The notes under the pieces: generated by a model
The model's input: only the letters and a program-made list of their open reading frames with translations
The model's database searches: none
Told to the model about the DNA's origin: nothing
Shown here: one piece after another, positions 7,818 through 58,762 of the stretch
Numbering within the stretch: the first letter of the stretch is position 1
Layout: each line of letters begins with the position of its first letter
NCBI GenBank assembly: GCA_001600695.1
Contig: BCKQ01000013.1
Coordinates: forward strand, 64,045-128,044
Length of the DNA: 64,000 nt
DNA from: Ascoidea asiatica JCM 7603
Lineage: Eukaryota > Fungi > Ascomycota
Reading direction: 5' to 3'
Made by a program: the position numbers and the translations under genes

Positions 7818-7832
7818 CTATATTATATTATA

Positions 7833-22594: not shown

Positions 22595-23628
22595 TTTGCA
22601 CTGATAAGCAGAAGTAAAAAGAAAAGAAAAGAAAATAAATGAAATGAAATAAAAATAAAAGGATATAAAATTAAAATTGGGTATCAGGAATTGAAAATTT
22701 GAAAAGATTTATTACTTGACGAGATGATATAAATGAATATTATTACTACTATTATTATATTGATTCTACTTATTCAATTGGTTCTATTGATTTAAAATAA
22801 TGAGATGAATTGAGATAAGTGGAAATTTTTTGAAGTAAAATTGGAGGATGAGATTTGTTTACATTTTACCTGCAAAATATTTGTTTATTCTTTGATCTTG
22901 TTTTAGATCTGATGTTAGTATGGATGCAGGATGCAAAAATATAATACGCATAAATATTTATGTATATGTATGATCAAGTGTATTGATGCACATTAAAAAT
23001 CCAAATATGTGGGTCTGACGAATGATCCTATGTCCTGGATGCACATCCTGGATGTGCTTCCTGGAATCCCCACCCAAATGTCTCATGCACTGATATAATT
23101 GTCCCTAATTTTCAGCACCTTTGCCCCTTCATCGGGATTATTGTTGTTTTTTGTGGTTCCGAAGCGAGGCCTGCTTTTTATCCTGCCTAGTCCCGCGCTT
23201 TTCTACCTTCACGCCAGTTCCGAACAATCCTAAATTCTGAGCTTGAACTGCAAACAAGCTTTTTTTTCTGCCGTTGAAGCTGCTGAACTTGCACTGATCT
23301 CAATGTTTTCAAAAATAAATCTATTTTTTTTATTAAAGGCACAAGAATTGAAGTTTAAGCAAATTATTACCCAGTTATTAGCTAATTCATATCATAATAT
23401 TCTTACAATTCATCTGAGAAAAAAAACGATCTATTAACTTACTGAAAAGAAAAGTAAACGAAATCTTTAGAATGACCAAATACTGATTGTTTCCAACAAT
23501 TCCTCCTATTATTTCATATTCCTATTCTATTTTATATATGAATATATCGTATAAATTCTTCTCAATTTCCTGTAAATATCATTGAGTTCTGTACATAATT
23601 TGAAAAAACTAATTTGTAAATATCTAAA

Positions 23629-26224
23629 ATGGTTCCTAATGTAAAAAACTATAATCATTCTGGTACTCCTCCAATAAGTCCAATAATCGATTCCAATGAT
23701 TCTACACCAAGAAATCAATCATATCAATCGGATGGATTGGATCATTTAGATCAATTGGATCAAATGAATGGTTCTATTAAATCGCCTGTTTCTCTTCCAA
23801 TGAGTCCAGTTACTTTGAATCCAAGTAATATAAATGATTTATTATCTTCTGGTTCAAATTTATCCCTTTCAACACTATCTTCAAGTAAATCTCTCAATAA
23901 ATCGGCAATTGACAACAATAACAATAACAATAACAATAAGATTATAAATCAAGACGAAGAAGGAGAATATGAAGAAGAAAATGAACAGGACAGAGAAGAA
24001 GAAGAAGAAATAGAAGCAGAAGCAGATGAAGAAACTGATTCTATTCAAGATTATAATCAATATTTGGATACTTCAAATACCAAAACTATTGATAGAAGTA
24101 CTGCTTCTTCAATAATAGGTGGTTGTTCGGTTCATGAATCCCAAAAAATCATTCAAAATGATCAAGATATAGAAGACATAAAAGATATAAAAGATATAAA
24201 AGATATAGAAGATACCGAAGTTAATAATGCTAGCCAGGTTAATGAGGTCAATCAAATCAATAATGATAACCAAAATAATAAAACTTTCAAGAAAACAACA
24301 ATCAAACAATCTTCAACAGAACCCAATTTCAAACCTACTCAAAATAATAAAAATATAAAAATTCTAAAACTAAAATCAAAAACTGAAGTTAACAATAACA
24401 ATAACAATAACAAAAGTAAAAACTTCAATTTTGATTTGAAATCGTTCATGAATAGATCCCATAAAAAATCAATATCCTCAATTTCAGCCAATTCTTTATC
24501 CTCATTACCTTCATTACCTTCATTATCATCCATATCTTCAATAAATTTAACAAATAAATTTAAAAATTATTATACTAATAATAAAAAATTATTAACTTTA
24601 GAATCTCATAAAATATTTTCATTTTCTTTGCCTTTTGCCAATCCTTTAAATTCCTTTACAAATAAATTATCCTCATCTCCATTATCTTCACCACTCAAAC
24701 ATGCTGGTAGTAATAATGCTACTACTACTGCTACTGCTACTACTACTACCCCTCATAATAATTACACCAATGAACCAAATGTAAAAGAAGAAATTAAACT
24801 AAAATTAAAAAGACAAGAAAGTATTTCAACATTTGAGGAACAAATTTTATTCAAAGATGTTAATAAGCAAGATAATACTAGATTTAGAGCTGTTAAGAAA
24901 TTATTAACACCGAATATTTTAAATTCATTTGAGGAAATTGATTCCATTTTTGATAATTTGAATGGGGATATAGTTATTTTAGGTGGTTATAGAGGTAGTA
25001 TTTTACGAAATAAATCAAATAATAGAAGATTGGATTCCATTGAAAGCAGGATTCAATTTAACTAAAATCAATTTAATTATTGGACCAAAAGATAGTGATG
25101 AAATAGAAATGGATGAAAATTTAGTTTATTCAAGTAGTATGTTGACACATATTGGACCAATTGATATAAGTCGAAAATTAATCAAAAAGCTAACTAATCT
25201 AAATAAATCAAAAGTTTGGGAATTTGGTTATGATTGGAGATTATCAAGTGATTTAAATTCGAAAAAATTATTAAGATTCCTAAAAACAATTTATTCAAAT
25301 ACCAATTTTGAAATCACCAAAAGAAAAGGGATTCTCATACTTGCTCATTCAATGGGAGGATTGATTGCCCATCATGTTTTGAATAAAGAACCTGAATTGA
25401 TTAGAGGATTGATTTATATAGGAGTTCCTAGTTCATGTCCGAATATTCTAGGACCAATGAGATATGGAGATTCAATATTGTTAAATAATAAAATCTTAAG
25501 TGCACAGGTCAATTTTTTAATGAGATCGAGTTATGTGTTTTTACCCTTAGATGGTAAATGTTTCGCAGATAAAGACACAAAAGAAGAGTTGATTGTTGAT
25601 TATTTTAATGTTGATAACTGGGTTAAATACAAATTATCGCCGTTAGTTGATAAAGAGAATTACAATAACAAGAGAAAAATATATTATAATAGAATTCAAA
25701 TGGATAGTATAAACTACGATAATATCCAAAATGGGCGTTTTCCTAATCATGATAATTATAATAATAGTATCGATTTGGATAATGATATTGAAAATCAAAT
25801 TCAATATCCTATAACATTTGAAGAATCTTATGAATATTTAGATAGAACATTGAAAAGAACCAAGAAATTTTTAAATGAATTGGATTATAAAGACGAATTG
25901 AAAGATAAATATCCTCCGTTGGCAGTTGTTTATGGAGATCAAGTGCCAACGTTAAGGGGCTGTTGGTTGAAAGATGGATATAATGGATTAGAAAGAGGTG
26001 AATATGGAGATTTCAAGTATGGTATTGGGGATGGAGTTGTTTATTATAAGACATTGATGCCAGAAAAAAAGGGATTTCCAATTGCAGGAAAATTCATTTC
26101 AGATCGTGGTCATGTTAGTTTAATGACAGATATGGAAGCTATGAGTAAAGCCATCAAGGCAATAATGGATAATGAAAGAATTGATGACATTGATGTTTCG
26201 ATTGATCCAAAAGATATAAAATGA
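23629..26224 (+). pseudogene. Frameshifted copy of the LCAT-like alpha/beta hydrolase (YJR098C-like)
   Basis: Matches 49044-51641 except for a 2-bp deletion near 25030 (AGA TTG GAT versus AGA TTA TGG ATT), which splits it into ORFs 23629-25065 and 24983-26224, and a synonymous change at 25960. Confidence 0.8.
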
Positions 26225-27457
26225 TTATTTGGTAGATGAATGTATATAGTAATTGAATTGAATTAGATTATCGGATAATAAATCTTCACTGGTTTGAAAA
26301 ACTGTATTACTTATTGAGTCTGTGATTGTATTATCAGACTGTGAACATCCATTCTCTACCTTCATTGAACTGACAGTTGAAGATTCCTCTACATCATTTG
26401 AAATTGTTGAAATTGCTGAAATTGTAATAGTATTCAAATTCATTTGCAGCTTGTGTAAGAAAAGTTGTATAAAAAAACTTTCCATTAGAGACTGTTATTG
26501 TTAAAAATGTTACTCCAGTTGTAGCAATTGATGATTGACAATCATTATTTGATTATATTATGAAATTGAAAATGGTATATGAGTTAAAATCATGAGAAAA
26601 AGGGTCTGAAATGATCTTAAAGAGCCATATTCTAGAGGTCAGAAGGTGTTAAAATATAATAAAACCACTGATTCCATAGATTATTTAACTTAAAAAAAAT
26701 ATGTATATGAAATAAAGAAAATAAGTATATGAAATAAATGGAATTCAGAATAGTCTTTAGCTATATCAAGCTTTTGATTTTTCGATGACAAGATATATTG
26801 TTTTATGATAGTGGTAATAATAATGTATTACACCTTTTTTATTTTCCCTCACTTGTTTGATTCTATTTCCTGCCATTTTTAGTGGTTCAATTAGATTATA
26901 AAATTATCATTACTACTAAGGTTTAAATCAAGGTTGGGAAGCAAATCTTCAAGACTCCAAGTAAGTACTTCAAAATACATTTTTCCAAACACACAATAAT
27001 TTTCATTCCCAACAGCCAAATATAGACCCAGTGAATTCATTAAGTCATTTTGCTTTATGCATTATCTCTGGGATTATCAGTTAATTTATCATTATTGGAG
27101 TGTGATTTCATAGAAGAAAACTTATCAAAAAAATCGGAATCTATTCTAAAGGAATCAGAAGAAAAAAACTCCAACAAAAATGGTTTCAGATCCGTATTCA
27201 TATTTGCAATTTGAAGTTTTGCTTCCATTAATGAAGAAAGGTATTTTAATAAATAATCTTGTGTCCCTAACATTGAAATTTGGAGGTAAAGCACTATTTA
27301 TCAATTTATATGCATATTGAGATTTTTCATTAATTGTTTTCAGTTCAATATCATTTTCATTTTTATTGTCTTCTTTTTTTTTGTTAACATTTACATTTGG
27401 GATTAGATTTAAATTTGAAGGATTAAATTATATAACCTTAAGTTTTCCACTAGACAT
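26225..27457 (-). pseudogene. Decayed ORF of unknown family (left-arm copy)
   Basis: Mirror of 47811-49043: coding-like frames interrupted by stops and frameshifts. Confidence 0.45.
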
Positions 27458-27706
27458 TATTGAATTAATTATTAATGATCTATAAATTAAAGTAAAAAAA
27501 TAAGAACCCTTTTAGGGGAAAGTTCTGTTTTTATATATTCATTCACAGATACTAAATATTAAATATTTGAGTTGGAAAAACATAGATATTTCATAAATTT
27601 GCTAACAAAAATAAAGCAAACATAAATGATTTTCGAAGATAGAAATTTAAGGTTAATTAAGGTTATGCTTCCTGCATGTCGCTGGAACCTTAATTATTAA
27701 CTTATG

Positions 27707-27910
27707 TCCCTTTAATACAAGCATTTGTGCTTTTTGTCGTATAGCGTTTTAAGAATCAAACCACGCACGTGAGTATCAAACGGAAAAGGTATTTAATACT
27801 CATCTATAAAAGCTAAACTAATTTTGGTTTTTTTAATACAGGTTTGCACCTGCTCGTTCAACCCAAAAACAGCTTTACGACAAAAAGCACAAATTCTTGT
27901 ATTAAAGGGA
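27707..27910. mobile_element. 204-bp MITE-like element with 35-bp terminal inverted repeats (left-arm copy)
   Basis: TCCCTTTAATACAAGCATTTGTGCTTTTTGTCGTA ... TACGACAAAAAGCACAAATTCTTGTATTAAAGGGA, 34/35 match. No target-site duplication seen. Confidence 0.5.
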
Positions 27911-28522
27911 TAAATACTTTAAATTGAACTGCTTGAATGTTATACTACAACCACAAACCCGGTCTCATAATAAGTACCTTACAACTGGTCGTAGCAATTA
28001 GAGCCACAAAAGTGGTCTTTAGTAGAAAAACCAAATAACTGGATTTACTCTAAAATATCCATATATTTGGTCTCATTTTTAGGGCTACCTCAATCCTGGC
28101 GTGATGACATTTCGAACTTTAAACTTGAGCCTCGTTAAAACGCCACCGAGAGAATTAAAAGCAGAGGCTCAACTTGAATTTTATCTTTTATCAACAACAA
28201 AAGAAATCAAAACAAACCACCTTTAAAATTAAAATGATTATTTTCATCTAGAGATAAATGATCCAATCGATGAATAAACATAAACTTGGACTCCATCAAT
28301 TCCAGCATCTTGAACAAAATGTTTAAATAATTTAATGAGGATTAGACTGTTGTTTGTCTTTGGTTTTGTTATTTAAATAGATTCGAATATTTCTAGTGAT
28401 TATATTGACTTCTGTTTTATTTACTTCTTCAAAGCGTTTAAAAGCGTTTAATAATATCGATTGAAAAGTAATATAAAGTTAATTATATCCACAAAATAAA
28501 GGAAAATCTTATATTTTAAAGT

Positions 28523-31500
28523 ATGAATAAAGATCAAAAGTTCTATAAAAGGAGAGTTTTAATAATTGGTGATGAAAATATTGGTAAATCCTCATTTGTT
28601 TCAAGATTAAAAAATGAACCTTTTTTAGATTTTAAAAGAGAAAATAATAACATTGATAATAATAATTTATCATATAAAATAGAAAAATCAGTTTATGATT
28701 TTCAATTAAATGAGAATAAAGTAATCACAATTGAATTTAATATTTTGAATATTTTTAATATTCAAGCTATTCATAATATTAACAAGAATGAAAATAATGA
28801 TAATATTAATTATAAATTAAAACTTTTAAATGATTTGAATAATGATTTATTACAGCCAAATTTAATTTATTGTTGTTTTTCAATTGATGATATTAATTCT
28901 TTAAATAATTTAAAAAATGTATATTTTTTAAATTTATTTCAAAATTTAAAAATCTTCAATTCTTCCATAAATTCTAATAATAATATTCCAATAATATTAA
29001 TTGGTTTAATAAATGATTCAAAAAATAATGAAATTTATTTAAATTCAAAAAGAGGTCAATCTAATGTTTATAATAGTTATAATTATAATTCAAATTTAGT
29101 TTCAAATGATCAAATTAAAACTTTCATAAATAATATAAATGATAATAAAAATCTAAGAATTTTAAAATATTTTGAAGCCTCTTCTTTTTTAAATCAATTC
29201 AATTATATTCCTTTTTTCAAAATTTTATCATTTTCAATTAATTATATCTTTTCAATAAAATCCTCAAGTTTTCAATTATTAAAAGATAATTTATTCTATT
29301 ATTTAAAATTTTTATCCTATAATATAAATTATTTCTCAATTGATTTAAAAGAAAATTTCTTAAATTTTAAAAATTCAAATTCAAATTCAAATAAAATTAT
29401 TTTTTATTTCTCTTATAATATTTCAAATAATCATTTAGATAATTTTAATAATTTTTTATATGATTTTTTCAATTCCTTTAATCAAATTAATTCAAATTTA
29501 ATTCAGTTCTTAAACAATATTGATATAAATTTAAACTTATTCGATTTTTTAAATTTTTTAAATATTTATTTATCTTTAAATGAATCAGATACTAATTCAA
29601 TTCTAAATTTATTAAAACAATTTTTTCATTCAAATGTTAATATTCAAATATATCTAGAAATTTTAAACAAATTCAATTCAAATATTTTTGGAAATATTAA
29701 TGATCTAAATAATTTAAATGATTTGAATATTCAAAATATTTTAAATTTAGATTTTTTCAAAGCTTGGGAATTAAATTTATTGAAAAAAAAACTGAATTCA
29801 AAAATCTTTAAATTTGATCATTCTTTATTTCAAGATATAATTAATGGTAATATATTTTCAAAATTTATCATTAATCAACTATATACTTTAAATAAGTTTA
29901 TTAAAAACAACAGTAGTTCCTCCTCAATTGATCCAAATATCATTCAGGTTATAGGGGATTTACAATCAAATTTATTAAATATCAATAAAAATTTAAAAAT
30001 TTTTATCATTCAAACAAAATCAAAAAAAATTAAAAATTTAATAAATTTTAATAAATTGAATTTATCAATTTCAGAGTATTATCCAAATTTCAATGAACTT
30101 TCAATCGATGAAAATGAAAATAATATTGAATCTGAAGAAGAAAAAGAGAAAAGTTTTTTTATAAATAATGATGAAATTATTTTTAAAAAGTTTTATTCAA
30201 TTGAACTAATTGATTATGATTCAAAAACAACTGAAAATAATAAATATTTTAAAAAAATTGTAATTTTATTTAATAAATTTTTTTTAATTGTTCAATTGAA
30301 TTTCAATGAAAATAATTTTTTATTAATTGAAAATTCTTTTAAATTCGATTATTTAAATTCAAATTCTATTAATGATTTGATTATATTTAATTTCACAAAT
30401 TATTATATAATTATTGATTTTAAAGAATTTATCAAAATTATACCAAATTTAAGTTTTGAAAATTATAAAGAAAAGAAAAATAAACTAAATTTTAAAAATT
30501 ATATTCAAAAATTATTATTATTTCAATTTGATAATGAAAATATTGGAATTTCATTTAGAATTAAAACTTTTAAATTAATTTATTCTTTAAATAAAAATTT
30601 ATATATTAATAATAAAGATAAAAATATTGAATGTTCAAAAAAATATATAATTAAAGAAAATTTAATAAATTTTGAAGAAATTAATTATTATAAAAATTTA
30701 ATTTTTGAATTATTTGAATTAATTAATAATTATAGTACATCATATTTAATTGATTATATAATTGAGGAAAAATTCATTAAAAAATTAAATTCAAATGATT
30801 TAAATTATTTAGGATGGAAAAATTTTTGGGAAATTAGTAATGAAGATAAAAAACTTTTTAAAGGTAATGAATTTGATAAAAATTCAACAATTTTTACATT
30901 AATTAAAAATCAAATTTTATTTATAAAAAATATTGAAAATTTCATTAAATTTGGTGATTTATTTTTAAAATATTGTGATGAAAATAAAATCAATAGTAAT
31001 AATTCAATTAAAGTTTATAAAGACTGTTTTGAGAATTATAAAATTATTTATGATAATCATTTTTATATGATTGTTAAACCATTAATTGAAAGTTTAATTA
31101 AAAATGGACCAATAATTTATAAAGAATATTTAGAATTATTTGATAAATATTTTAAAGAAGCAACAAAATTTTGGCTAAAATTTCTTAAAAATTATACAAA
31201 TTTTATAATATTATTTGATATTGGAAATATTTTAAAGAAAAATAAATTTAAAAAAAATTATATGATGAAGGAAATTATTGAATGGTTAAATTTTTTAAAA
31301 AGGAATGAAAAAAAAGAAGATAAAAAAAAAGAAATTTTAATTAGAAAAGTTTTATCATCACCATTCAATTATTCATTTTATAATTTAAATACAATGAGAT
31401 CATTAGTTAATTATTATATTAAAGAAGAAAAACCTAATATTTCTATAATTAATTATTGTATAAAAGTGAGTAATGAATCAAATGAATTTAATGATATTTG

Positions 31501-32203
31501 TAATTTTAGTTTTGGAATTTATAAAATTCAAGCATTAAAGAATATAATTAAAATTAAAGAAAATCTTAATATTAAGATAAATTTTAATGATATCAATAAT
31601 AATATTGAAAATATAATTTTTGGATATTGTAAAATTAATAATAAAGAAAGTATTAATAATAATAGTATTAAAAGAAAGAATGGAATACTTGTTGGATTTA
31701 AAAAACAATTAAGTATTAGAATAAATGAACAATTTGATAAAATTGATAAAATTGAAGATTTTGAAGATACAAATAGTTTAAAAAGTTCAAAGAGTTGTAA
31801 TAATGGTATTAATTATTTTAATAAGAAAAGTAATGGTAACTTAATAAATGAAGAATATTGTGAAGAAGATATTGGATATAATAAAGAATTTAATTGTCCA
31901 ATAATTATAATATTATTAACAAAAAGTATTTTGATTACAAAAATATTATTTGATAAATTATTAATTGTTAGAAATTCAATAAAAATTGAAGATGTTAAAT
32001 TTAAAGAATTTGAAAAATGTGAAGAAAATATTAATAATTGTGATAATGAATTTGATAAAGTGAATTTAACAAAAGTTCGAATTAGTGAAAAATTTGAAAA
32101 TTATGATAATGAAATTTACTTAATTCAAAATTTTAAAGATGAATTAAAGAATCCTTTAGTGAAATTAAGAGAAAAATATAAAGATTCGAAGGAAAGTGAA
32201 TGA
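28523..32203 (+). CDS. Divergent Rho-like GTPase domain fused to a degenerate DH-PH (Rom/Tus1-like RhoGEF) region
   Basis: N-terminus: RRVLIIGDENIGKSS, CCFSIDD..SL, IPIILIG, YFEASS. C-terminal third: GWKNFWEIS..., IFTLIKNQ..FIKNI, CFENYKIIYDNH..IVKPL...GPII, IILLTKSILITK. Confidence 0.6.
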   Translation: MNKDQKFYKRRVLIIGDENIGKSSFVSRLKNEPFLDFKRENNNIDNNNLSYKIEKSVYDFQLNENKVITIEFNILNIFNIQAIHNINKNENNDNINYKLKLLNDLNNDLLQPNLIYCCFSIDDINSLNNLKNVYFLNLFQNLKIFNSSINSNNNIPIILIGLINDSKNNEIYLNSKRGQSNVYNSYNYNSNLVSNDQIKTFINNINDNKNLRILKYFEASSFLNQFNYIPFFKILSFSINYIFSIKSSSFQLLKDNLFYYLKFLSYNINYFSIDLKENFLNFKNSNSNSNKIIFYFSYNISNNHLDNFNNFLYDFFNSFNQINSNLIQFLNNIDINLNLFDFLNFLNIYLSLNESDTNSILNLLKQFFHSNVNIQIYLEILNKFNSNIFGNINDLNNLNDLNIQNILNLDFFKAWELNLLKKKLNSKIFKFDHSLFQDIINGNIFSKFIINQLYTLNKFIKNNSSSSSIDPNIIQVIGDLQSNLLNINKNLKIFIIQTKSKKIKNLINFNKLNLSISEYYPNFNELSIDENENNIESEEEKEKSFFINNDEIIFKKFYSIELIDYDSKTTENNKYFKKIVILFNKFFLIVQLNFNENNFLLIENSFKFDYLNSNSINDLIIFNFTNYYIIIDFKEFIKIIPNLSFENYKEKKNKLNFKNYIQKLLLFQFDNENIGISFRIKTFKLIYSLNKNLYINNKDKNIECSKKYIIKENLINFEEINYYKNLIFELFELINNYSTSYLIDYIIEEKFIKKLNSNDLNYLGWKNFWEISNEDKKLFKGNEFDKNSTIFTLIKNQILFIKNIENFIKFGDLFLKYCDENKINSNNSIKVYKDCFENYKIIYDNHFYMIVKPLIESLIKNGPIIYKEYLELFDKYFKEATKFWLKFLKNYTNFIILFDIGNILKKNKFKKNYMMKEIIEWLNFLKRNEKKEDKKKEILIRKVLSSPFNYSFYNLNTMRSLVNYYIKEEKPNISIINYCIKVSNESNEFNDICNFSFGIYKIQALKNIIKIKENLNIKINFNDINNNIENIIFGYCKINNKESINNNSIKRKNGILVGFKKQLSIRINEQFDKIDKIEDFEDTNSLKSSKSCNNGINYFNKKSNGNLINEEYCEEDIGYNKEFNCPIIIILLTKSILITKILFDKLLIVRNSIKIEDVKFKEFEKCEENINNCDNEFDKVNLTKVRISEKFENYDNEIYLIQNFKDELKNPLVKLREKYKDSKESE

Positions 32204-34241
32204 ATTAATGAATGAGTGAATAAATAAATAAATAAATAAATCAGCTAATTGACTAATCGGGGAATCGAATGAAATATTTTAATAAACCGCACGTGATGTT
32301 TTCTTTTTAGGGAAAAAATCACAAGGATTAGAAAATAGACGACAAAAGGGTGGGTAGTAACATTTAAGTGCTTTAATATACAGTAAAGTACGTTAACGGT
32401 AACGTTAAAACTAACGTCGATAGCAACGGTGATAGCAACGGTAATAATAATGGTGTTAGCAACGTTGCTAAAAAAGTTAACGGGAGTTGAATTGCTACTA
32501 GGGAGACCAATCACAGAGTCAAGTGAAATTTGAGTAAAAAAGCTACTGTGGCTAGAGTTACGCTGAATTTCTTTTTGAGCACCTGAAATTAGCCAGGATT
32601 CGGTAGATTCAACGTTTTTATTTGCGTTTACGTTACTCAAGTTAATTATTTTATCCTATTTTTGATTTTCTTGCTAACGGTGACGTCTGCCAATTTTAAA
32701 CGGTAATTTCTGATTGCACAAGAAAGTGAGTGATTAACGTTTAATTAAATAAAAATTATTAATTAAATTCAAAATCAATTGAAAATGAATTAAATTAATT
32801 AAATTAGTTAGCCCTATTAATTAATTGAGTGACTAAACTAGAGCAAGTGATTGAGGTGCTGTAGTTAATTAATAACTGTTGGAAAACCGTTAGACGATTG
32901 AGAAGCAATCAAGTAGACTGGTCTAAGCCAAGCTAACGGTGGAACTCTTTGAAAAGTTCGAATTGAAAGATGTATTCCATGGTATTTTTTGTAGTGTTGG
33001 TGTATGATGTTCTTCTATTGTTGCTGAAATTAAGAACTGGATCAGTATCGTAGTTTGAATATGGATGATCTCAATGGAGGAAATATACTGGCCAGTGTAA
33101 CAGGGGTAAATTGAGATAAAGCAAACAAGCAAGCAAAGCCAGAAGACAAAACACAAAAGACAAAACACAATAGTAAAAAGAGAGCATTTTTTCCTTGATA
33201 AATGTAGATTGTGTGGTGAGTTTTGCGGGCGGAAGAGCGGGCAGAGTCCCAATATGAGCGGGTGCTTCCAGACCCCCCTTTGCAGCGGGCTGCAGGGCTT
33301 CCAGAATCCTTTTTGCAAACCGAGCCAATCCGCTGTCCTCCCTGCTTAAAAAAAAAACGCTTCTACACGCCGCAGTGCTGCCGAAGGGTGTGCACCAGCA
33401 TTTTGAATGTCAAGGTTGCCAGGAAATCCGTTCACGTGCCGCTATCCGGTGTCCTTTCTGCTCCATCGAAGCAAGCCAGTCTCGTTTTTGCAGGGCTAGC
33501 GCCAAAAAGAAATGGAAAACTGCAGAAACAGCAGCACAAGCAGCAAAAGCAACAGCTCAAGAAGATTTCCAACGACGAAGACTGAAAGATAATCAAAAAG
33601 ACGAAGAAAGAGCAGCAGTTGTTCATCCAAGTTATTTCACTTGAACTTCAACGTTACCAAACACCACTTCGAAATACCACTCAAAACTACCACTTTTTTC
33701 ACTTATTTCACTGATTTCGCATATTTCACTTATTATTTTGATTATTATTTAAAATAATTTATATTTTTTTATCAGTGCCTGGGCCTGGAACTGGAACTGG
33801 AAGTGAGTGTGTATCAATTTAGTCCTTTTTTGTCCATAGTGAAAACTGAAAATCTGTTTTTCTGCTGTAAAATTTCTAATTTCCAATTTCCAAATTTTGA
33901 TTTCTAATTTTTTATTCTTATTCTTATTTTTATTCTATTTCTCTGTTTCTTTATTCTTATTTTCTATTATTCTTAATACTTATTAGCTATTCAATTTCCA
34001 TTTATCATTTACTTCTTCCTTATTCTTATTGTTAACCTGAAATTTATACTCAACTTCAAATATTTATATCATATCTATCATATTTTATTATATTATATCA
34101 TATCATATCATATTATATTATATTATATTACATACAATATATTATTATTCTCATTTATTCTTTATATCCTATAATCATTATATCCTTTAATTATTATCTT
34201 ATAATATAATATTCATTTCTAATAAGTCAATCAATTTAAAA

Positions 34242-37887: not shown

Positions 37888-38191
37888 CATGCCCCAGAGA
37901 ACAATCACAGAACAAAAAAGCACTTGCACGAATTTTCTGGGCGATTTCGATTTTCGAAACTTCTTTTGGTTTTGGTTTTGATTCTGATTTTGATTTTGAT
38001 TTTGATCCATTTCTGTTAATCTTTCTGTTTAAGACTTTTCAAAATCTAAATTTGCTTCTTATTATTATTTATGAACAAGAAATAATCAATAACCAACAAG
38101 AATTAAGAAATAACTAAATAAGAAATATTTCTAATAAATACTTCAATATATCCCTGTGCTCTTTTGTAAAAATTATTTTCCATAATCTCAG

Positions 38192-41377: not shown

Positions 41378-43324
41378 ATGTCTGCTTCTACGAGTGCTCC
41401 TCAGGTTTATGGAGGCGATGAAGTTGGCGCCATTGTTTTAGATCCTGGATCTTATTCAACTTCTGGTGGTTTTGCAGGAGATGATTTTCCAAGAGTGACA
41501 GTTCCATCATTTACCTCGTATGATCCAACTATTGAATCAATTGATGTTGAAAGAGACAAGTATAGTAATAATTATGAAAGAAGAAAGCATTATTATTATG
41601 GAGAATCAATTGATTTACCAAGATCAAATTATGAAATCAAACCAATAATCAAAGATTCAAATATTCTAGATTGGGATTCATCAATTGAATTATTTGATTT
41701 TATTTTCAAAGAAATGTATTTAAACCCAGATGATTTAAAAGAATATCCTTTATTATTAACTGAAAGTATATGGAATAGTAAAAAAAATAAATTAAAATCT
41801 ATGGAAATTTTTTTAGAATTTTTTGAAAATCCTGGATTTTATATGGTTAAAAATCCAACATGTTTATCATTTGCAAGTGGTAAACCAAATAGTTTAGTTA
41901 TTGATATTGGTCATGATATTTCAACAGTTACACCAGTTATTGATGGTATGTGTTTAATTAAAAATACAACAATGACACATTATTCTGGAAAATTTTTATC
42001 ATTATATATTGAAACATTTTTCAATAAAAATAAAATTGAATTAATTTCAAAATTTTTAATAAAATCAAAAATTCCAAAAATTTATTCATTTAATGAAGAA
42101 ATTAATAAAAGAAATAAACCAATTTTTGAATTAAAAAAATTTAAAGATATTAATTTAACAAAAAGTTTTAAAAATTATCATAAAGAAAAAATTTTAAATG
42201 AAATTAAAGAAACAATTATAAGAATTGATAAATATGGATATGAATCAATAGAAATTTTTAAAAATCAAGATTTAAATAAAATTTTAAAACAAAATTTAAA
42301 TCAAAATGATAATTCTGATAATAATAGTTCTAGTCCAAGTTCAAATTCTAATTCAAATGCAGTTTCTAATGCTAATGCAAATGCAATTTTAAATGAATTA
42401 AATAATTATTATAATAATAATTATAATAATGGAAATCCATTTGAACTTATAAATTTTGAATTACCAAATGGTTTACAAATTGAATTTAATGAAAATAGAT
42501 TTAAATTTGGAGATATTTTATTTTCACCAAATAAATTTTTTGAAGAATATAAAGAATTTAAAAGGATTTATAAAGAAGAAAATGGTAATGATGACGATAA
42601 TAAAAAGGATAAAAATATTTATGATTCATTTGAATGGGTAGAAGAAAATGGAGAATTGGAAATTAATACTGGATTAGATAATGATTATATGTCATTTAAA
42701 AAATATAAAAAAAAAGAAAATTTAATAAATTTAAGTAATAATTTAAATAATAATAAAATTAATAAAGATATTAAAGAAAAAAGTAATGAGATAGTTAAAA
42801 AAGAAGAAACTACAAATATAAATGATATTAAAAATGAAAAAGAAAATAAAATAGATAATGAAGACATAAATATAGATAAAGATAAAGATAAAGATAAAGT
42901 TATAGATAAAGTTATAGTTAAAGATAAAGATAAAGAGAATGATAAAGGTAAAAATAAAGATAAAGATAAAGAAGTTATTAGAGAAATAAATAGAGTAATA
43001 CCGGGTATAGCAGAATTAGCACAAATGTCATTATCATCAGTTGATACAGATATTAAACCACAAATTGCCCATAATATAATAATAAGTGGATCATTATCGT
43101 TAATACCAGGATTTAATGAAAGACTTAATGATGAATTAATTAAATTAAATCCAGGTATGAAAATTAGAGTTCAAAGTATGGGAAATTTTTATGAAAGAAA
43201 ATTTCAAAATTGGATTGGTGGTAGTATTTTAGCAAGTTTAGGTACATTTCATCAACTTTGGGTAAGTAAAAAAGAATATGAAGAAATTGGTGCAGATAGA
43301 TTAATTGTTGAAAGATTTAGATAA
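41378..43324 (+). CDS. ARP4: Nuclear actin-related protein 4
   Basis: QVYGGDEVGAIVLDPGS, GFAGDDFP and WIGGSILASLGTFHQLWVSKKEYEE..DRL..RFR. Confidence 0.96.
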   Translation: MSASTSAPQVYGGDEVGAIVLDPGSYSTSGGFAGDDFPRVTVPSFTSYDPTIESIDVERDKYSNNYERRKHYYYGESIDLPRSNYEIKPIIKDSNILDWDSSIELFDFIFKEMYLNPDDLKEYPLLLTESIWNSKKNKLKSMEIFLEFFENPGFYMVKNPTCLSFASGKPNSLVIDIGHDISTVTPVIDGMCLIKNTTMTHYSGKFLSLYIETFFNKNKIELISKFLIKSKIPKIYSFNEEINKRNKPIFELKKFKDINLTKSFKNYHKEKILNEIKETIIRIDKYGYESIEIFKNQDLNKILKQNLNQNDNSDNNSSSPSSNSNSNAVSNANANAILNELNNYYNNNYNNGNPFELINFELPNGLQIEFNENRFKFGDILFSPNKFFEEYKEFKRIYKEENGNDDDNKKDKNIYDSFEWVEENGELEINTGLDNDYMSFKKYKKKENLINLSNNLNNNKINKDIKEKSNEIVKKEETTNINDIKNEKENKIDNEDINIDKDKDKDKVIDKVIVKDKDKENDKGKNKDKDKEVIREINRVIPGIAELAQMSLSSVDTDIKPQIAHNIIISGSLSLIPGFNERLNDELIKLNPGMKIRVQSMGNFYERKFQNWIGGSILASLGTFHQLWVSKKEYEEIGADRLIVERFR

Positions 43325-43371
43325 TTTAAATTAATTAATTGTTTTGTTTGAAATCATAAGTAATATTCCTG

Positions 43372-43409
<38 letters not shown>

Positions 43410-43992
43410 GTAAATGGGATAATCAATGAACCGAATAAGAAAGAAAGAAAGAAAGAAACCAGTGCTTCTTGGGAGGTCTCATTGATCTGACTCACGAAAC
43501 GCATAACCACCACAAACACCATCTTTTGAACTGTCTCTTGCACCATCTTTGCACCATCTTTTTGTGGCGGTGGCTGGTAGTCCAAAATAAGATTCAAGTG
43601 GCTTTAAGAGGCTAGTCAGTGTGGCTGATTTAACCGTGCAAAACCACCGCAAAACTAAAACTGAAAACGCGCGCTGAAACTGCTCAATCACGTGCCGTGT
43701 TATTTATTTTTTGTTTCATTGCGAAAATATTTTGATCCGTTGGAAAATCGCAGAAAAAAAAGCAGAGAACTCAGGAAATTAAAATAAATAAAGCAATAAA
43801 ACAATAAAACAATAAAACTTGTTGAAACGACAGAAGAGTTAAAATATTTAAACAGAAACAAGAGAAGCTGATTCATTCATTCCATCTGAATTATCATCAT
43901 AACTATTTTATTGATATATTTAGCAAAAGGAGACCCATTATTGTATACTATCATCATTAATACAAGATTAATATTTCAAATTATATAAAAAA

Positions 43993-46581
43993 ATGTCTAA
44001 AAGAGGTGCAGCTTTTCAAATTAATAAGGATAGAAAAGGTTATGATTCTGAAGATGATGATAAACCTGCAATTCCAATCATTGCTTCAAATGATATTTTA
44101 TCTAAAAGAAAAATTTTAAAACCAAGATCAAGAAGAAATATTGGCGGTGATATAAATACTTTTAATAATTTAATTCCTAAAAATTCTTCTATTCCTTCTA
44201 ATTTACCAACTCCAAATCCTTCTTTTAATCAAGATCAACAAATTCAACAATCTTCCAAACCTTATAAAATTGATGATGAACCAAAGAAAATTAATCCATT
44301 TGCAATATTTTCAAATAAATCTCCAAAATTTAATGGTTTATCAACTTCAAAACCAAAATCATTTCCAATTTTTTCAAATAATGATAAAAATTCAATCTCA
44401 AATTTAAATACAAATCAATTTAAATTTAATAATAACAATAATAAAGAAAATTCGATTGCAACTATTTCAAATTCAAATATATTAATTAATAATAATAATA
44501 TTAGTAATGTTAGTAATAATACTACTAAAAACTTATCCACTAATAATAATAATAACAATATCAATATCAATAATAAAGATAATGATAACTCGATTATGGC
44601 TTCTCAAATTAAAGCTTTAAATGAAAATTTCATGAAAACTTTAATAATAACAACAAGAGATGAACCTTTAGCTAATTATTCTGAATATTGTGAAAAATAT
44701 ATTAATTATTATAAAGATATTAGAAATGGTAAACTTCCTTTACCTTCTACTACATCCTCTTTACCTCCATCATCATCATCATCTTCTTCTCAATCTACTA
44801 TTAAAAATTCAATTATCAATAATCAATTACCTTCTTCTTCTTCAAATAAATTATTAGAAAGTTCAAAAGAATCTCAAAGTATTTTTAATAATAATATCAA
44901 TACTAATACTAATACTAAAAATAGTCTTTTTTCTTTCATACCTAAAAATACAACTAACAATGAAAACAATAATAATACAAATACTCCTAAAAAATCATTA
45001 TTCCCAATAATAAAACAAGAAGATAAAATTCCTTCTTTAAGTTTTAATTTCTCTAATGATAAATCTAATGATAAATCTAATGAAAAATCTAATGATAAAT
45101 CCAATAATAAAGTTTTTGATTTTGGTAAAAAAACTGGTTTACCTGCAAAAGGTTTTACATTTAATGTAAATAATAATATTACTCCAAGTATTTTTACTAG
45201 TAACTCTAATGATAATAATAATAATAATAATAATAAAGAAACTGAAACAGAAAAACAAGAAGAAAAAGCAAAAGCAGGAGATACAAAAATTGAAAATAAA
45301 AAAGTTGGCTTTACATTTAATGCACCTTCAAAATCAAATAATTCTCCTTTTAAATTTGGTAATGATTTAAAAAAAAATACTAATAATAATGAAAATGAAA
45401 ATAAGAATGAAAAACCTAAAGGTCCTGTATTTACAATTGATAAATCAAAAATTGAAAATAAAAATCCTGTATTCAAATTCAATTCAAAAGATAATACATC
45501 TACTAAAAAAATAGAAGAAAAAGTAAATGAAAAAGTTGAGGAAAAACCAAAAGAAAATAAAATTGAACCCAAAAAACCAATTTTTTCTTTCAATACTTCA
45601 AATTCTAATTCTAATACTAATTCAATCTCAAATTCAATTTCAAATTCAAACTCAATTTTTGGTAATCCTTCATCATCAATATTTGGTAATAATAATAACA
45701 ATGGTTCTTTAACCAAAAATGATGATACCAAGAAAGCTTCAAATGAACCTAAAAATGAAGATACTAACCAAGATAAAAAACCAATATTTTCATTTACTTC
45801 TAATAATTCAAATCCATTTAGTTTTACATCAAAACCAACAAATGAAAATAGCAATAAAGATACTAATTCTGCTTCTTTATTTCCAAAATTTTCATTTACA
45901 TCAAATTCAAACTTAAATTCAAATAATACAAATAACACAAATAATACAATTAATGAAAGTTCAAATAAATCTACTTTTTCTTTTACACCAAGTAATACCA
46001 ATAATACTACCAATAATAGTACTAGTAGTGTATTTGGAAATACAAATGGATTTAAATTTTCATTTATTCCAGTGAAGCCAAATGAAACAAATGGAGAAAC
46101 TATTAATAAAGTAACAGAAAATAACTTAGGAACAAATCAAGAAAGTAAATCAGATTCTAATATAAATACAACTAATGCTACTTCTAATAATACGGAAAAT
46201 AATAATGATATAAATGGACATACAGGACCAACTGGAGAAGAAGATGAAGAAGTCAAATTTACTCAAAAATGTAGATTATTAGAATTTAATAAAGAAGAAA
46301 AAAAATTTGACTCAAAAGGTTTAGGATTTTTAAAGATTTTATATAATAAAGAAAATAAAAAATCAAGATTTTTATTAAGAGCAGAAGGATCAGACAGAAT
46401 TTTATATAATAATTTTTTAAATAAAAAAATTAATTATGAAATTGTTGGAAAATATATAAAAGTTCCAACACCAATTGTTGATAAAGATGGTAAACAATCT
46501 TTAAATGTTTTTATGTTTAGAGTTAAAGATAATAGTGAATTAATTAAAATGATTAATGAAGTGAAAGATCTTATTGATTAA
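43993..46581 (+). CDS. NUP2: Nucleoporin Nup2/Nup50
   Basis: N-terminal MSKRGAAFQI..D and SKRKILKPRSR, KALNENF, FxF repeats, C-terminal RanBD (GEEDEE...KGLGFLKIL...SRFLLRAEG). Confidence 0.9.
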   Translation: MSKRGAAFQINKDRKGYDSEDDDKPAIPIIASNDILSKRKILKPRSRRNIGGDINTFNNLIPKNSSIPSNLPTPNPSFNQDQQIQQSSKPYKIDDEPKKINPFAIFSNKSPKFNGLSTSKPKSFPIFSNNDKNSISNLNTNQFKFNNNNNKENSIATISNSNILINNNNISNVSNNTTKNLSTNNNNNNININNKDNDNSIMASQIKALNENFMKTLIITTRDEPLANYSEYCEKYINYYKDIRNGKLPLPSTTSSLPPSSSSSSSQSTIKNSIINNQLPSSSSNKLLESSKESQSIFNNNINTNTNTKNSLFSFIPKNTTNNENNNNTNTPKKSLFPIIKQEDKIPSLSFNFSNDKSNDKSNEKSNDKSNNKVFDFGKKTGLPAKGFTFNVNNNITPSIFTSNSNDNNNNNNNKETETEKQEEKAKAGDTKIENKKVGFTFNAPSKSNNSPFKFGNDLKKNTNNNENENKNEKPKGPVFTIDKSKIENKNPVFKFNSKDNTSTKKIEEKVNEKVEEKPKENKIEPKKPIFSFNTSNSNSNTNSISNSISNSNSIFGNPSSSIFGNNNNNGSLTKNDDTKKASNEPKNEDTNQDKKPIFSFTSNNSNPFSFTSKPTNENSNKDTNSASLFPKFSFTSNSNLNSNNTNNTNNTINESSNKSTFSFTPSNTNNTTNNSTSSVFGNTNGFKFSFIPVKPNETNGETINKVTENNLGTNQESKSDSNINTTNATSNNTENNNDINGHTGPTGEEDEEVKFTQKCRLLEFNKEEKKFDSKGLGFLKILYNKENKKSRFLLRAEGSDRILYNNFLNKKINYEIVGKYIKVPTPIVDKDGKQSLNVFMFRVKDNSELIKMINEVKDLID

Positions 46582-47357
46582 AGATTTTTTTAAAATACTT
46601 TATTTATATTTTTTTCCACTTTTTCTTTATGATTTGCAAAATTTAATTTTAATTTTTATTTTAGTCTTTCATTTTTTTAATTTTATAAATTTTCAAATTT
46701 CTTTTTGCTTTTATATAATTTTTTGCTGAAACTTATTGGCTCACTTGTTCTTCAAAATTTGTTAGAACTTAACCTAACTTATCTTAACCTAAACTCTTTT
46801 TTCAAATTATTATAATATTATCACTCATTAGACTATTATGCTGAATACGTATTTTCCAAATAATTTTATTAATTCATTTCAATTTAATTTAATTCAACAA
46901 AAAAACAAACAAACAACCTTATTATATGAATAACTAGAACTGTAGTTGATTGTATTTTCTCTTCATGACTTTGATCAAATTATAGACTACAACTGGATTC
47001 AATTTAAAAAATAGGTTCAAGACTTTAAAGAGATTAGTAAGTGAAAGCTAAAAACAACTCAAGGACAAATGGTATACTGAACATGAAAATCTTGTGCCAT
47101 TTCCAGGCCTCGAAACATTTTTGTGAAAGCAACCGTGGCTCAAGTTTAAAGTTCGAAATGTCATCACGCCAGGATTGAGGTAGCCCTAAAAATGAGACCA
47201 AATATATGGATATTTTAGAGTAAATCCAGTTATTTGGTTTTTCTACTAAAGACCACTTTTGTGGCTCTAATTGCTACGACCAGTTGTAAGGTACTTATTA
47301 TGAGACCGGGTTTGTGGTTGTAGTATAACATTCAAGCAGTTCAATTTAAAGTATTTA

Positions 47358-47561
47358 TCCCTTTAATACAAGAATTTGTGCTTTTTGTCGTAAAGCTGTT
47401 TTTGGGTTGAACGAGCAGGTGCAAACCTGTATTAAAAAAACCAAAATTAGTTTAGCTTTTATAGATGAGTATTAAATACCTTTTCCGTTTGATACTCACG
47501 TGCGTGGTTTGATTCTTAAAACGCTATACGACAAAAAGCACAAATGCTTGTATTAAAGGGA
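47358..47561. mobile_element. 204-bp MITE-like element with 35-bp terminal inverted repeats (right-arm copy)
   Basis: 47358-47392 and 47527-47561 are reverse complements with 1 mismatch. Confidence 0.5.
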
Positions 47562-47810
47562 CATAAGTTAATAATTAAGGTTCCAGCGACATGCAGGAAG
47601 CATAACCTTAATTAACCTTAAATTTCTATCTTCGAAAATCATTTATGTTTGCTTTATTTTTGTTAGCAAATTTATGAAATATCTATGTTTTTCCAACTCA
47701 AATATTTAATATTTAGTATCTGTGAATGAATATATAAAAACAGAACTTTCCCCTAAAAGGGTTCTTATTTTTTTACTTTAATTTATAGATCATTAATAAT
47801 TAATTCAATA

Positions 47811-49043
47811 ATGTCTAGTGGAAAACTTAAGGTTATATAATTTAATCCTTCAAATTTAAATCTAATCCCAAATGTAAATGTTAACAAAAAAAAAGAAGAC
47901 AATAAAAATGAAAATGATATTGAACTGAAAACAATTAATGAAAAATCTCAATATGCATATAAATTGATAAATAGTGCTTTACCTCCAAATTTCAATGTTA
48001 GGGACACAAGATTATTTATTAAAATACCTTTCTTCATTAATGGAAGCAAAACTTCAAATTGCAAATATGAATACGGATCTGAAACCATTTTTGTTGGAGT
48101 TTTTTTCTTCTGATTCCTTTAGAATAGATTCCGATTTTTTTGATAAGTTTTCTTCTATGAAATCACACTCCAATAATGATAAATTAACTGATAATCCCAG
48201 AGATAATGCATAAAGCAAAATGACTTAATGAATTCACTGGGTCTATATTTGGCTGTTGGGAATGAAAATTATTGTGTGTTTGGAAAAATGTATTTTGAAG
48301 TACTTACTTGGAGTCTTGAAGATTTGCTTCCCAACCTTGATTTAAACCTTAGTAGTAATGATAATTTTATAATCTAATTGAACCACTAAAAATGGCAGGA
48401 AATAGAATCAAACAAGTGAGGGAAAATAAAAAAGGTGTAATACATTATTATTACCACTATCATAAAACAATATATCTTGTCATCGAAAAATCAAAAGCTT
48501 GATATAGCTAAAGACTATTCTGAATTCCATTTATTTCATATACTTATTTTCTTTATTTCATATACATATTTTTTTTAAGTTAAATAATCTATGGAATCAG
48601 TGGTTTTATTATATTTTAACACCTTCTGACCTCTAGAATATGGCTCTTTAAGATCATTTCAGACCCTTTTTCTCATGATTTTAACTCATATACCATTTTC
48701 AATTTCATAATATAATCAAATAATGATTGTCAATCATCAATTGCTACAACTGGAGTAACATTTTTAACAATAACAGTCTCTAATGGAAAGTTTTTTTATA
48801 CAACTTTTCTTACACAAGCTGCAAATGAATTTGAATACTATTACAATTTCAGCAATTTCAACAATTTCAAATGATGTAGAGGAATCTTCAACTGTCAGTT
48901 CAATGAAGGTAGAGAATGGATGTTCACAGTCTGATAATACAATCACAGACTCAATAAGTAATACAGTTTTTCAAACCAGTGAAGATTTATTATCCGATAA
49001 TCTAATTCAATTCAATTACTATATACATTCATCTACCAAATAA
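47811..49043 (+). pseudogene. Decayed ORF of unknown family (right-arm copy)
   Basis: ATG at 47811: MSSGKLKVI*FNPSNLNLIP...SALPPNF, then shifted frames QDYLLKYLSSLMEAKLQ...DNA*, QNDLMNSLGLYLAVGNENYCVFGKMYFEVLTWSLEDLLP...*LNH*KWQEIESNK*, and MESFFIQLFLHKLQ...SSTK*. Confidence 0.45.
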
Positions 49044-51641
49044 TCATTTTATATCTTTTGGATCAATCGAAACATCAATGTCATCAATTCTTTCATTATC
49101 CATTATTGCCTTGATGGCTTTACTCATAGCTTCCATATCTGTCATTAAACTAACATGACCACGATCTGAAATGAATTTTCCTGCAATTGGAAATCCCTTT
49201 TTTTCTGGCATCAATGTCTTATAATAAACAACTCCATCCCCAATACCATACTTGAAATCTCCATATTCACCTCTTTCTAATCCATTATATCCATCTTTCA
49301 ACCAACACCCCCTTAACGTTGGCACTTGATCTCCATAAACAACTGCCAACGGAGGATATTTATCTTTCAATTCGTCTTTATAATCCAATTCATTTAAAAA
49401 TTTCTTGGTTCTTTTCAATGTTCTATCTAAATATTCATAAGATTCTTCAAATGTTATAGGATATTGAATTTGATTTTCAATATCATTATCCAAATCGATA
49501 CTATTATTATAATTATCATGATTAGGAAAACGCCCATTTTGGATATTATCGTAGTTTATACTATCCATTTGAATTCTATTATAATATATTTTTCTCTTGT
49601 TATTGTAATTCTCTTTATCAACTAACGGCGATAATTTGTATTTAACCCAGTTATCAACATTAAAATAATCAACAATCAACTCTTCTTTTGTGTCTTTATC
49701 TGCGAAACATTTACCATCTAAGGGTAAAAACACATAACTCGATCTCATTAAAAAATTGACCTGTGCACTTAAGATTTTATTATTTAACAATATTGAATCT
49801 CCATATCTCATTGGTCCTAGAATATTCGGACATGAACTAGGAACTCCTATATAAATCAATCCTCTAATCAATTCAGGTTCTTTATTCAAAACATGATGGG
49901 CAATCAATCCTCCCATTGAATGAGCAAGTATGAGAATCCCTTTTCTTTTGGTGATTTCAAAATTGGTATTTGAATAAATTGTTTTTAGGAATCTTAATAA
50001 TTTTTTCGAATTTAAATCACTTGATAATCTCCAATCATAACCAAATTCCCAAACTTTTGATTTATTTAGATTAGTTAGCTTTTTGATTAATTTTCGACTT
50101 ATATCAATTGGTCCAATATGTGTCAACATACTACTTGAATAAACTAAATTTTCATCCATTTCTATTTCATCACTATCTTTTGGTCCAATAATTAAATTGA
50201 TTTTAGTTAAATTGAATCCTGCTTTCAATGGAATCCATAATCTTCTATTATTTGATTTATTTCGTAAAATACTACCTCTATAACCACCTAAAATAACTAT
50301 ATCCCCATTCAAATTATCAAAAATGGAATCAATTTCCTCAAATGAATTTAAAATATTCGGTGTTAATAATTTCTTAACAGCTCTAAATCTAGTATTATCT
50401 TGCTTATTAACATCTTTGAATAAAATTTGTTCCTCAAATGTTGAAATACTTTCTTGTCTTTTTAATTTTAGTTTAATTTCTTCTTTTACATTTGGTTCAT
50501 TGGTGTAATTATTATGAGGGGTAGTAGTAGTAGCAGTAGCAGTAGTAGTAGCATTATTACTACCAGCATGTTTGAGTGGTGAAGATAATGGAGATGAGGA
50601 TAATTTATTTGTAAAGGAATTTAAAGGATTGGCAAAAGGCAAAGAAAATGAAAATATTTTATGAGATTCTAAAGTTAATAATTTTTTATTATTAGTATAA
50701 TAATTTTTAAATTTATTTGTTAAATTTATTGAAGATATGGATGATAATGAAGGTAATGAAGGTAATGAGGATAAAGAATTGGCTGAAATTGAGGATATTG
50801 ATTTTTTATGGGATCTATTCATGAACGATTTCAAATCAAAATTGAAGTTTTTACTTTTGTTATTGTTATTGTTATTGTTAACTTCAGTTTTTGATTTTAG
50901 TTTTAGAATTTTTATATTTTTATTATTTTGAGTAGGTTTGAAATTGGGTTCTGTTGAAGATTGTTTGATTGTTGTTTTCTTGAAAGTTTTATTATTTTGG
51001 TTATCATTATTGATTTGATTGACCTCATTAACCTGGCTAGCATTATTAACTTCGGTATCTTCTATATCTTTTATATCTTTTATATCTTTTATGTCTTCTA
51101 TATCTTGATCATTTTGAATGATTTTTTGGGATTCATGAACCGAACAACCACCTATTATTGAAGAAGCAGTACTTCTATCAATAGTTTTGGTATTTGAAGT
51201 ATCCAAATATTGATTATAATCTTGAATAGAATCAGTTTCTTCATCTGCTTCTGCTTCTATTTCTTCTTCTTCTTCTCTGTCCTGTTCATTTTCTTCTTCA
51301 TATTCTCCTTCTTCGTCTTGATTTATAATCTTATTGTTATTGTTATTGTTATTGTTGTCAATTGCCGATTTATTGAGAGATTTACTTGAAGATAGTGTTG
51401 AAAGGGATAAATTTGAACCAGAAGATAATAAATCATTTATATTACTTGGATTCAAAGTAACTGGACTCATTGGAAGAGAAACAGGCGATTTAATAGAACC
51501 ATTCATTTGATCCAATTGATCTAAATGATCCAATCCATCCGATTGATATGATTGATTTCTTGGTGTAGAATCATTGGAATCGATTATTGGACTTATTGGA
51601 GGAGTACCAGAATGATTATAGTTTTTTACATTAGGAACCAT
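49044..51641 (-). CDS. LCAT/PGAP1-like alpha/beta hydrolase (YJR098C-like) with long disordered N-terminus; intact copy
   Basis: IVILGGYRGSIL, RRLWIP, FGYDWRLS, AHSMGG nucleophile elbow, GDGVV (Asp) and GHVSLM (His). Confidence 0.88.
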   Translation of the reverse strand: MVPNVKNYNHSGTPPISPIIDSNDSTPRNQSYQSDGLDHLDQLDQMNGSIKSPVSLPMSPVTLNPSNINDLLSSGSNLSLSTLSSSKSLNKSAIDNNNNNNNNKIINQDEEGEYEEENEQDREEEEEIEAEADEETDSIQDYNQYLDTSNTKTIDRSTASSIIGGCSVHESQKIIQNDQDIEDIKDIKDIKDIEDTEVNNASQVNEVNQINNDNQNNKTFKKTTIKQSSTEPNFKPTQNNKNIKILKLKSKTEVNNNNNNNKSKNFNFDLKSFMNRSHKKSISSISANSLSSLPSLPSLSSISSINLTNKFKNYYTNNKKLLTLESHKIFSFSLPFANPLNSFTNKLSSSPLSSPLKHAGSNNATTTATATTTTPHNNYTNEPNVKEEIKLKLKRQESISTFEEQILFKDVNKQDNTRFRAVKKLLTPNILNSFEEIDSIFDNLNGDIVILGGYRGSILRNKSNNRRLWIPLKAGFNLTKINLIIGPKDSDEIEMDENLVYSSSMLTHIGPIDISRKLIKKLTNLNKSKVWEFGYDWRLSSDLNSKKLLRFLKTIYSNTNFEITKRKGILILAHSMGGLIAHHVLNKEPELIRGLIYIGVPSSCPNILGPMRYGDSILLNNKILSAQVNFLMRSSYVFLPLDGKCFADKDTKEELIVDYFNVDNWVKYKLSPLVDKENYNNKRKIYYNRIQMDSINYDNIQNGRFPNHDNYNNSIDLDNDIENQIQYPITFEESYEYLDRTLKRTKKFLNELDYKDELKDKYPPLAVVYGDQVPTLRGCWLKDGYNGLERGEYGDFKYGIGDGVVYYKTLMPEKKGFPIAGKFISDRGHVSLMTDMEAMSKAIKAIMDNERIDDIDVSIDPKDIK

Positions 51642-52737
51642 TTTAGATATTTACAAATTAGTTTTTTCAAATTATGTACAGAACTCAATGATATTTACAG
51701 GAAATTGAGAAGAATTTATACGATATATTCATATATAAAATAGAATAGGAATATGAAATAATAGGAGGAATTGTTGGAAACAATCAGTATTTGGTCATTC
51801 TAAAGATTTCGTTTACTTTTCTTTTCAGTAAGTTAATAGATCGTTTTTTTTCTCAGATGAATTGTAAGAATATTATGATATGAATTAGCTAATAACTGGG
51901 TAATAATTTGCTTAAACTTCAATTCTTGTGCCTTTAATAAAAAAAATAGATTTATTTTTGAAAACATTGAGATCAGTGCAAGTTCAGCAGCTTCAACGGC
52001 AGAAAAAAAAGCTTGTTTGCAGTTCAAGCTCAGAATTTAGGATTGTTCGGAACTGGCGTGAAGGTAGAAAAGCGCGGGACTAGGCAGGATAAAAAGCAGG
52101 CCTCGCTTCGGAACCACAAAAAACAACAATAATCCCGATGAAGGGGCAAAGGTGCTGAAAATTAGGGACAATTATATCAGTGCATGAGACATTTGGGTGG
52201 GGATTCCAGGAAGCACATTTTGATAGTGCACATGAAACTACTTCATTTAAAATGTTTATAAAATAAGCCCACATTATGCTAAATTATTACTAATCGTGTC
52301 ACATGATGCTACGTAATTGTCTAAATGCTTATTTTTACGCCACCACTGCCACAACTTCTACTGCCACTCCCATTTGTTCACCCTTTATGGGGCTGTAGGG
52401 CTTTTTTTGTCTGCGATGACTCCAAAAATTGGTGACGAGAAATTCGGCAAGTGATGTAAACGATACTGTAAAGTATGAGTATGATTGGAATATCAATGGA
52501 ATATTGAAGCGATAATATTTGATTTAGGTGAAGGATAACTGAAAAAAAATATACTCAAAGGTAAACTGAAGATTTTATGAATTGACTCATAATTAATATA
52601 ACGTGAGATTTAAACTAAGAAAAATATCCATAAACTTATTATTTAATCTAATAAGAAAAAGTATATAACGTTAATAATAATAATAAATAATATAGTAGAA
52701 TAAAATAATAATATAATAAGGAACAACATATAGAAAA

Positions 52738-58721: not shown

Positions 58722-58762
<41 letters not shown>

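Follow-up and report, generated by a model that had tools for sequence, protein, structure and literature searches.

A block of five housekeeping genes in the yeast Ascoidea asiatica lies between two inverted, near-identical arms of about 5 kb, and we put the probability at roughly 0.8 that these arms are a very recent, accidental inverted segmental duplication produced by DNA break repair. The locus joins a known class, that of young inverted duplications that contain genes and lie on either side of a gene block. As a segmental duplication it is young and otherwise ordinary. It is of use as a fresh snapshot of yeast gene-order reshuffling, in which the junctions can be read, one of the two copies has already become a pseudogene, and the genes stand in a different order from that in Ascoidea rubescens. 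The window, meaning the whole 64-kb stretch of DNA that was analysed, covers positions 64,045-128,044 of a 441,995-bp scaffold, in a genome of 20.3 Mb and 71 contigs. All positions given here are those of the window unless a contig is named, and no tRNAs were found in it by ARAGORN.

Geometry and Identity of the Arms

Self-BLAST and pairwise alignment of the left arm with the reverse complement of the right arm gave an identity of 99.94% (Table 1). Two differences separate the arms, and the pairwise alignment contains no third. The first is a 2-bp indel after 25030, where the left arm is without the bases at about 50238-50239, and the second is a C at 25960 facing a G at 49308, which is synonymous in Gly778 (GGG/GGC). 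The near-identity spans the decayed repeat DNA as well, and it is lost sharply at each of the four junctions, beyond which the flanks show no tapering of homology. The first-pass annotation had described the same repeat coordinates, the same 19,005 bp of enclosed DNA, the same two differences, and decayed DNA as identical as coding DNA, all of which these comparisons bear out. Taken alone, the near-identity of the arms cannot separate youth from gene conversion. A paralogue on contig 3 carries a third base at the SNP position, so the ancestral SNP allele is not shown by contig 3.

Table 1. Features of the inverted repeat, the enclosed block and the neighbouring genes, in window positions.
Feature	Position	Strand	Remarks
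TOP2	17864..22594	-	outer-left neighbour
Near-perfect palindrome with three TCCTGGA units at 13-bp spacing	23033..23065		straddles the outer-left junction
Left arm	23052..28131	+	5,080 bp; self-comparison; contigs branch at both ends
Frameshifted hydrolase copy	23629..26224	+	left arm; stop after 478 codons
MITE, left-arm copy	27706..27911		TA-flanked; terminal inverted repeats of about 35-45 bp
12-bp inverted repeat (11/12)	28122..28175		straddles the new inner-left junction
Enclosed single-copy block	28132..47136	+	19,005 bp; five housekeeping genes
1226-aa ORF	28523..32203	+	weak N-terminal Ras-like domain (Pfam)
PDE2-like phosphodiesterase	34242..37292	+	PDEase_I
HAL3/SIS2-like flavoprotein	38192..40630	+	Flavoprotein
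ARP4	41378..43324	+	Actin
NUP2	43993..46581	+	NUP50+RanBP1
Sequence inward of the right arm, with the NUP2 3' end	46345..47136	-	joined to the orphan element on contig 7 too
Right arm	47137..52218	-	5,082 bp; self-comparison
MITE, right-arm copy	47357..47562		counterpart of the MITE at 27706..27911
Decayed orphan-gene-family copy with conserved upstream motif	47569..48994	+	right arm; mirror at about 26274-27699
YJR098C-like alpha/beta-hydrolase (LCAT-like), intact	49044..51641	-	right arm; 865 aa
PDX3	52738..53475	+	outer-right neighbour

Contents of the Arms

Each arm, as its annotation reads, is ordinary DNA, consisting of a hydrolase gene, a decayed copy of a dispersed orphan family, and a MITE. 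Homologues of the intact hydrolase are named YJR098C and are about 45-53% identical to it, and the frameshifted left-arm copy is truncated upstream of the AHSMGG nucleophile motif (residue 573). An older YJR098C-like copy, broken and internally deleted, lies on contig 3 together with the orphan upstream motif (L011:7830-9621; 77-85% identity) and is without the MITE. A comparison of gene neighbourhoods found no shared neighbours linking the hydrolase gene to TOP2 or PDX3 in Pachysolen, Wickerhamomyces, and one Logan contig.

The orphan family is represented by about 20 dispersed copies, which are 65-81% identical and have the upstream motif conserved, and its protein found no match in Pfam or Atlas. 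The orphan gene encodes roughly 400 aa, and its copies are 41-57% identical to each other and mostly decayed (e.g., L016-L023, L026-L037). The copies on contigs 3 and 7 bring along host DNA that adjoins the present locus. The arm MITE has at least ten relatives. Its family (L044-L053) is TA-flanked and comprises classes of about 205 bp and 305 bp, the 305-bp copies having near-identical ends. On contigs 41 and 32 (L052:941-4171, L053:4369-7599), near-identical decayed ORF clusters lie beside MITEs and adjoin integrase-like fragments. The arm was also considered as a transposon unit and rejected as such, because neither terminal inverted repeats nor a target-site duplication mark its ends.

Old and New Junctions

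The orphan-family copy on contig 7 runs on past the arm's inner end through 47071-46345, at 76-79% identity, and into the NUP2 3' end. This second NUP2 3' end (L016:3202-3728) is old and about 78% identical, and it is joined to the orphan element. A weak continuation toward the NUP2 side was also seen in the contig 3 copy, with a score of 127 against a shuffle maximum of 120, and no comparable continuation was found from the arm element into the GTPase side. Because contig 7 is continuous into NUP2 and there is no continuity into the GTPase side, these comparisons show that the junction between arm and NUP2 is ancestral and the one between arm and GTPase is new. The arm DNA was ancestrally single and lay at one breakpoint, as in a staggered-break duplication.

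The other junctions carry short repeats of their own. The palindrome at the outer-left junction is a strong fold (z = -4.6), with 0 of 200 shuffles folding as well, and the third TCCTGGA unit falls inside the left arm. Together, the palindrome and the array suggest native continuity of the outer-left junction on the TOP2 side. The PDX3-side junction presents nothing but a 6-bp direct repeat. Inverted matches of 12/14 and 9/10 positions link the arm termini to the left flanks, a level reached in none of 4,847 overlapping intergenic windows. These inverted matches at both left junctions would also fit insertion of the left arm as a copy, fold-back microhomology having acted at each of its ends.

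Enclosed Genes and Outer Neighbours

The first-pass annotation had placed five genes on the plus strand of the block, and this stands. It had called the first of them a GTPase/GEF fusion, of which the GTPase part is retained through the weak Ras domain, and the GEF part is not, as Pfam finds no GEF domain in the ORF. It had also rightly named the outer neighbours; the distance to the nearest arm is 457 bp for TOP2 and 519 bp for PDX3. The widest gap in the block, at 32204-34241 (2 kb), contains AACG-bearing motifs in repeated copies, together with a patch of high GC content near 33200-33600, and is probably the PDE2 promoter. The 1226-aa ORF is one of two unusually long Ras/Rho-like ORFs, the other being at 57978-60044 (688 aa), and has no detectable match in the NUP2-PDE2 interval of A. 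rubescens.

Proposed Origin of the Duplication

We propose that break repair copied 5 kb in inverted orientation, 19 kb away. In a version coupled to an inversion, the ancestor would have had the order TOP2 - arm - NUP2 ... GTPase - PDX3. Staggered breakage or template switching at two sites, the TOP2 upstream palindrome and the spacer between GTPase and PDX3, would have turned the 19-kb block round and, in doing so, placed a copy of the 5-kb arm at the block's far end. Joining by fold-back microhomology agrees with the short inverted repeat that straddles the new inner junction. The 2-bp deletion inactivated one hydrolase copy, either during copying or since. Alternatively, a reversed copy of the right arm may have entered the TOP2-GTPase spacer, the block keeping its orientation, an origin that agrees with the inverted-repeat signatures at both left junctions. 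We infer that the inversion-coupled duplication has a little better than an even chance, and the plain inverted insertion a little less than one. The first-pass annotation had offered the duplicated scar of a recent rearrangement as one of two readings. That reading is supported here, with one inner junction ancestral, the other new, and arms made of ordinary duplicated DNA.

Two precedents were counted in favour of the duplication (PMC1885836, PMC6591007). In Drosophila, inversions are associated with inverted duplications, for which a staggered-break model was put forward (Ranz et al. 2007, PMC1885836). As at the present locus, ancestrally unique genic DNA was duplicated in inverted orientation at both ends of a block, and one copy often decays. 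The Drosophila duplications reach about 1.9 kb at the longest, with an identity of about 88%, whereas the A. asiatica arms are 5 kb and 99.94% identical, and the inversion itself is one that we infer in A. asiatica. In Candida albicans, there are long ORF-containing inverted repeats, such as repeats 124 and 144 (Todd et al. 2019, PMC6591007), and the DNA between long inverted repeats inverts by non-allelic homologous recombination (PMC6591007). The A. asiatica arms are likewise intrachromosomal inverted copies at the kb scale, >99% identical, made of ORF and intergenic DNA, lying tens of kb apart (11-32 kb in C. albicans), and not tied to MAT. The A. asiatica arm is longer, with 5.08 kb against 1.7-3.2 kb, and, unlike the C. 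albicans repeats, it has one frameshifted gene copy; inversion of the A. asiatica block is a possibility. The new junctions also resemble those of synthesis-dependent MMEJ, which has been defined at single breaks in Drosophila (Yu and McVey 2010, PMC2943611; PMC5728401), in that short inverted or direct repeats span them; by its sequence, the locus suggests that this process may have had a role in A. asiatica.

The arms are now a substrate for ordinary homologous recombination, and by analogy with C. albicans passive flipping through recombination between them is possible. The block may flip at low frequency, which would have little or no effect on expression. The only evident local effect would come from a crossover in the outer 2 kb, after which the TOP2 side would carry the intact hydrolase allele and the PDX3 side the broken one.

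The arms could also be an older inverted duplication, whose near-identity was kept by repeated gene conversion and unregulated flipping, as in homogenised centromeric or plastid inverted repeats. The near-identity across decayed DNA agrees with this, as does the fact that the locus gave rise to copies before (on contig 3 at 77-85% and on contig 7 at about 78%). We nevertheless consider it improbable, given the abrupt loss of identity at every junction, flanks without tapering homology, and a frameshift and SNP that persist between the arms.

Short-Read Support for Two Arms

An assembly or haplotype artefact would have one arm on each homologue of a diploid, with both merged into one scaffold. 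A. asiatica has been published as a heterothallic diploid (PMC6692504), and 5 kb is too long for short reads to span. Contigs from three public runs, belonging to two studies, were placed on 22600-28580, which covers the left arm, its junctions, and its flanks. The three runs possibly come from the assembly's source strain and are not counted as independent isolates. Arm contigs start at 23052 in two runs and at 23072 in the third, and they stop at 28131 in all three. The flank contig on the TOP2 side is unbroken up to 23081 in the two runs for which this was shown, and its counterpart on the GTPase side begins at 28102 in every run. The resulting 30-base contig overlaps at the left-arm ends are the pattern expected when an assembly graph branches at a two-copy repeat, and the left-flank contigs of the three runs have no branch for an empty-site allele.

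Depth is in agreement with this. The first-pass annotation had associated an artefact with half depth per arm; the left arm, which was covered here, has about twice the flank depth, with arm and flank contigs at about 100 and 53 in run X2 and about 89 and 45 in run X3. Contig depth is a crude measure, so the branch points carry the main weight of the evidence. The frameshift allele with the 2-bp deletion occurs in contigs of all three runs, both SNP alleles are present among runs of one sample, and the 64-kb window has 0 Ns. With these results set against it, we regard the artefact as highly unlikely.

Comparison with Mating-Type Flip/Flop Systems

The other reading of the first-pass annotation was a dedicated flip/flop cassette not tied to MAT. 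This would mean a programmed switch, either by regulated inversion of the block or by swapping the intact and broken hydrolase alleles between TOP2-side and PDX3-side promoters. The closest known switch is the FF1 system of Ogataea polymorpha and A. rubescens (PMC6692504, PMC5720833). Its defining features are MAT genes at both ends and repression by a centromere or telomere (PMC6692504), and nitrogen starvation induces it in O. polymorpha (PMC5720833). In FF1 as in A. asiatica, one inverted repeat flanks an internal block, and the O. polymorpha region is also 19 kb long (PMC5720833). The arms of A. asiatica, moreover, differ by a null allele. The A. asiatica block is without MAT genes and without an evident centromere or telomere that would silence one end, and the species is classed as heterothallic (PMC6692504).

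The absence of HMG-box and alpha-box genes that the first-pass annotation had reported is confirmed, as all such matches of the genome are on other contigs and none on the present scaffold, the alpha-box match being only on contig 50. By these HMG-box and alpha-box searches there are no MATa and MATalpha at the ends of the region, and the enclosed genes are housekeeping genes. The first-pass observation that no centromere or telomere is evident outside the arms also holds as far as the neighbours go. Each arm has a gene within about 0.5 kb, no neighbour of a silencing kind is evident, and the distances from the arms to the scaffold ends are 87 kb and 326 kb. The widest intergenic gap inside the block is just 2 kb. 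After a flip, every enclosed gene would lie beside the same identical 5-kb arm flank as before. ARP4 and TOP2 are essential in S. cerevisiae, which also speaks against switching here. The dedicated cassette thus finds no support, and we give the programmed switch a very small chance.

The least credible explanation is an origin by transposition, with the arm either being a transposon in its own right or having been carried along when the MITE or the orphan element transposed aberrantly. The arm does contain both elements and has older partial copies on contigs 3 and 7, and in the copy on contig 7 an indel boundary falls only a few bases from the position of the arm's inner end. Against this, the MITE ends lie at least 220 bp inside the arm end, and no transposase domain was found.

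Synteny and Other Inverted Pairs in the Genome

The best matches of PDX3 and ARP4 are in A. rubescens, where STE24, HAL3, ARP4, NUP2, a RHO-like gene, PDE2, and an aminotransferase follow in a row on one strand, and PDX3 is on another scaffold. The same genes are locally reshuffled in A. asiatica. The reversal distance to the A. rubescens order is 3 for either orientation of the block, so synteny does not show which orientation is ancestral. In A. rubescens, MED18 precedes PDX3; in A. asiatica, it lies on contig 18, and the A. rubescens PDX3 locus therefore gives no anchor. Homologue searches yielded no recognisable TOP2 and YJR098C loci in A. rubescens. STE24 is inverted relative to A. rubescens, and just downstream of it, at 7575-7830, are AT-rich overlapping palindromes (154 bp, 92% self-complementary).

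Two further inverted pairs were identified by coordinates, their sequence identity not being compared. These are a DER1-family gene pair 12 kb apart (contig 20:168240-180551) and an actin-family (ARP6-like) pair 27 kb apart (contig 16:272637-301649). The local reshuffling and these pairs were counted for the duplication, and the equal reversal distance and an arm length beyond that of the Drosophila duplications were counted against it. Likelier than a regulated switch, but still less probable than not, is that the lineage has an unusually active process of duplication-coupled inversion, of which the present block would be one fresh product. If such blocks prove abundant in the genome, A. asiatica would be a good test system for inversions that arise with flanking duplications, as proposed for Drosophila. 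The orientation of such repeat-flanked blocks is not established by short-read assemblies. A third actin-family copy, equal in length to the members of the contig 16 pair, is present on contig 46.
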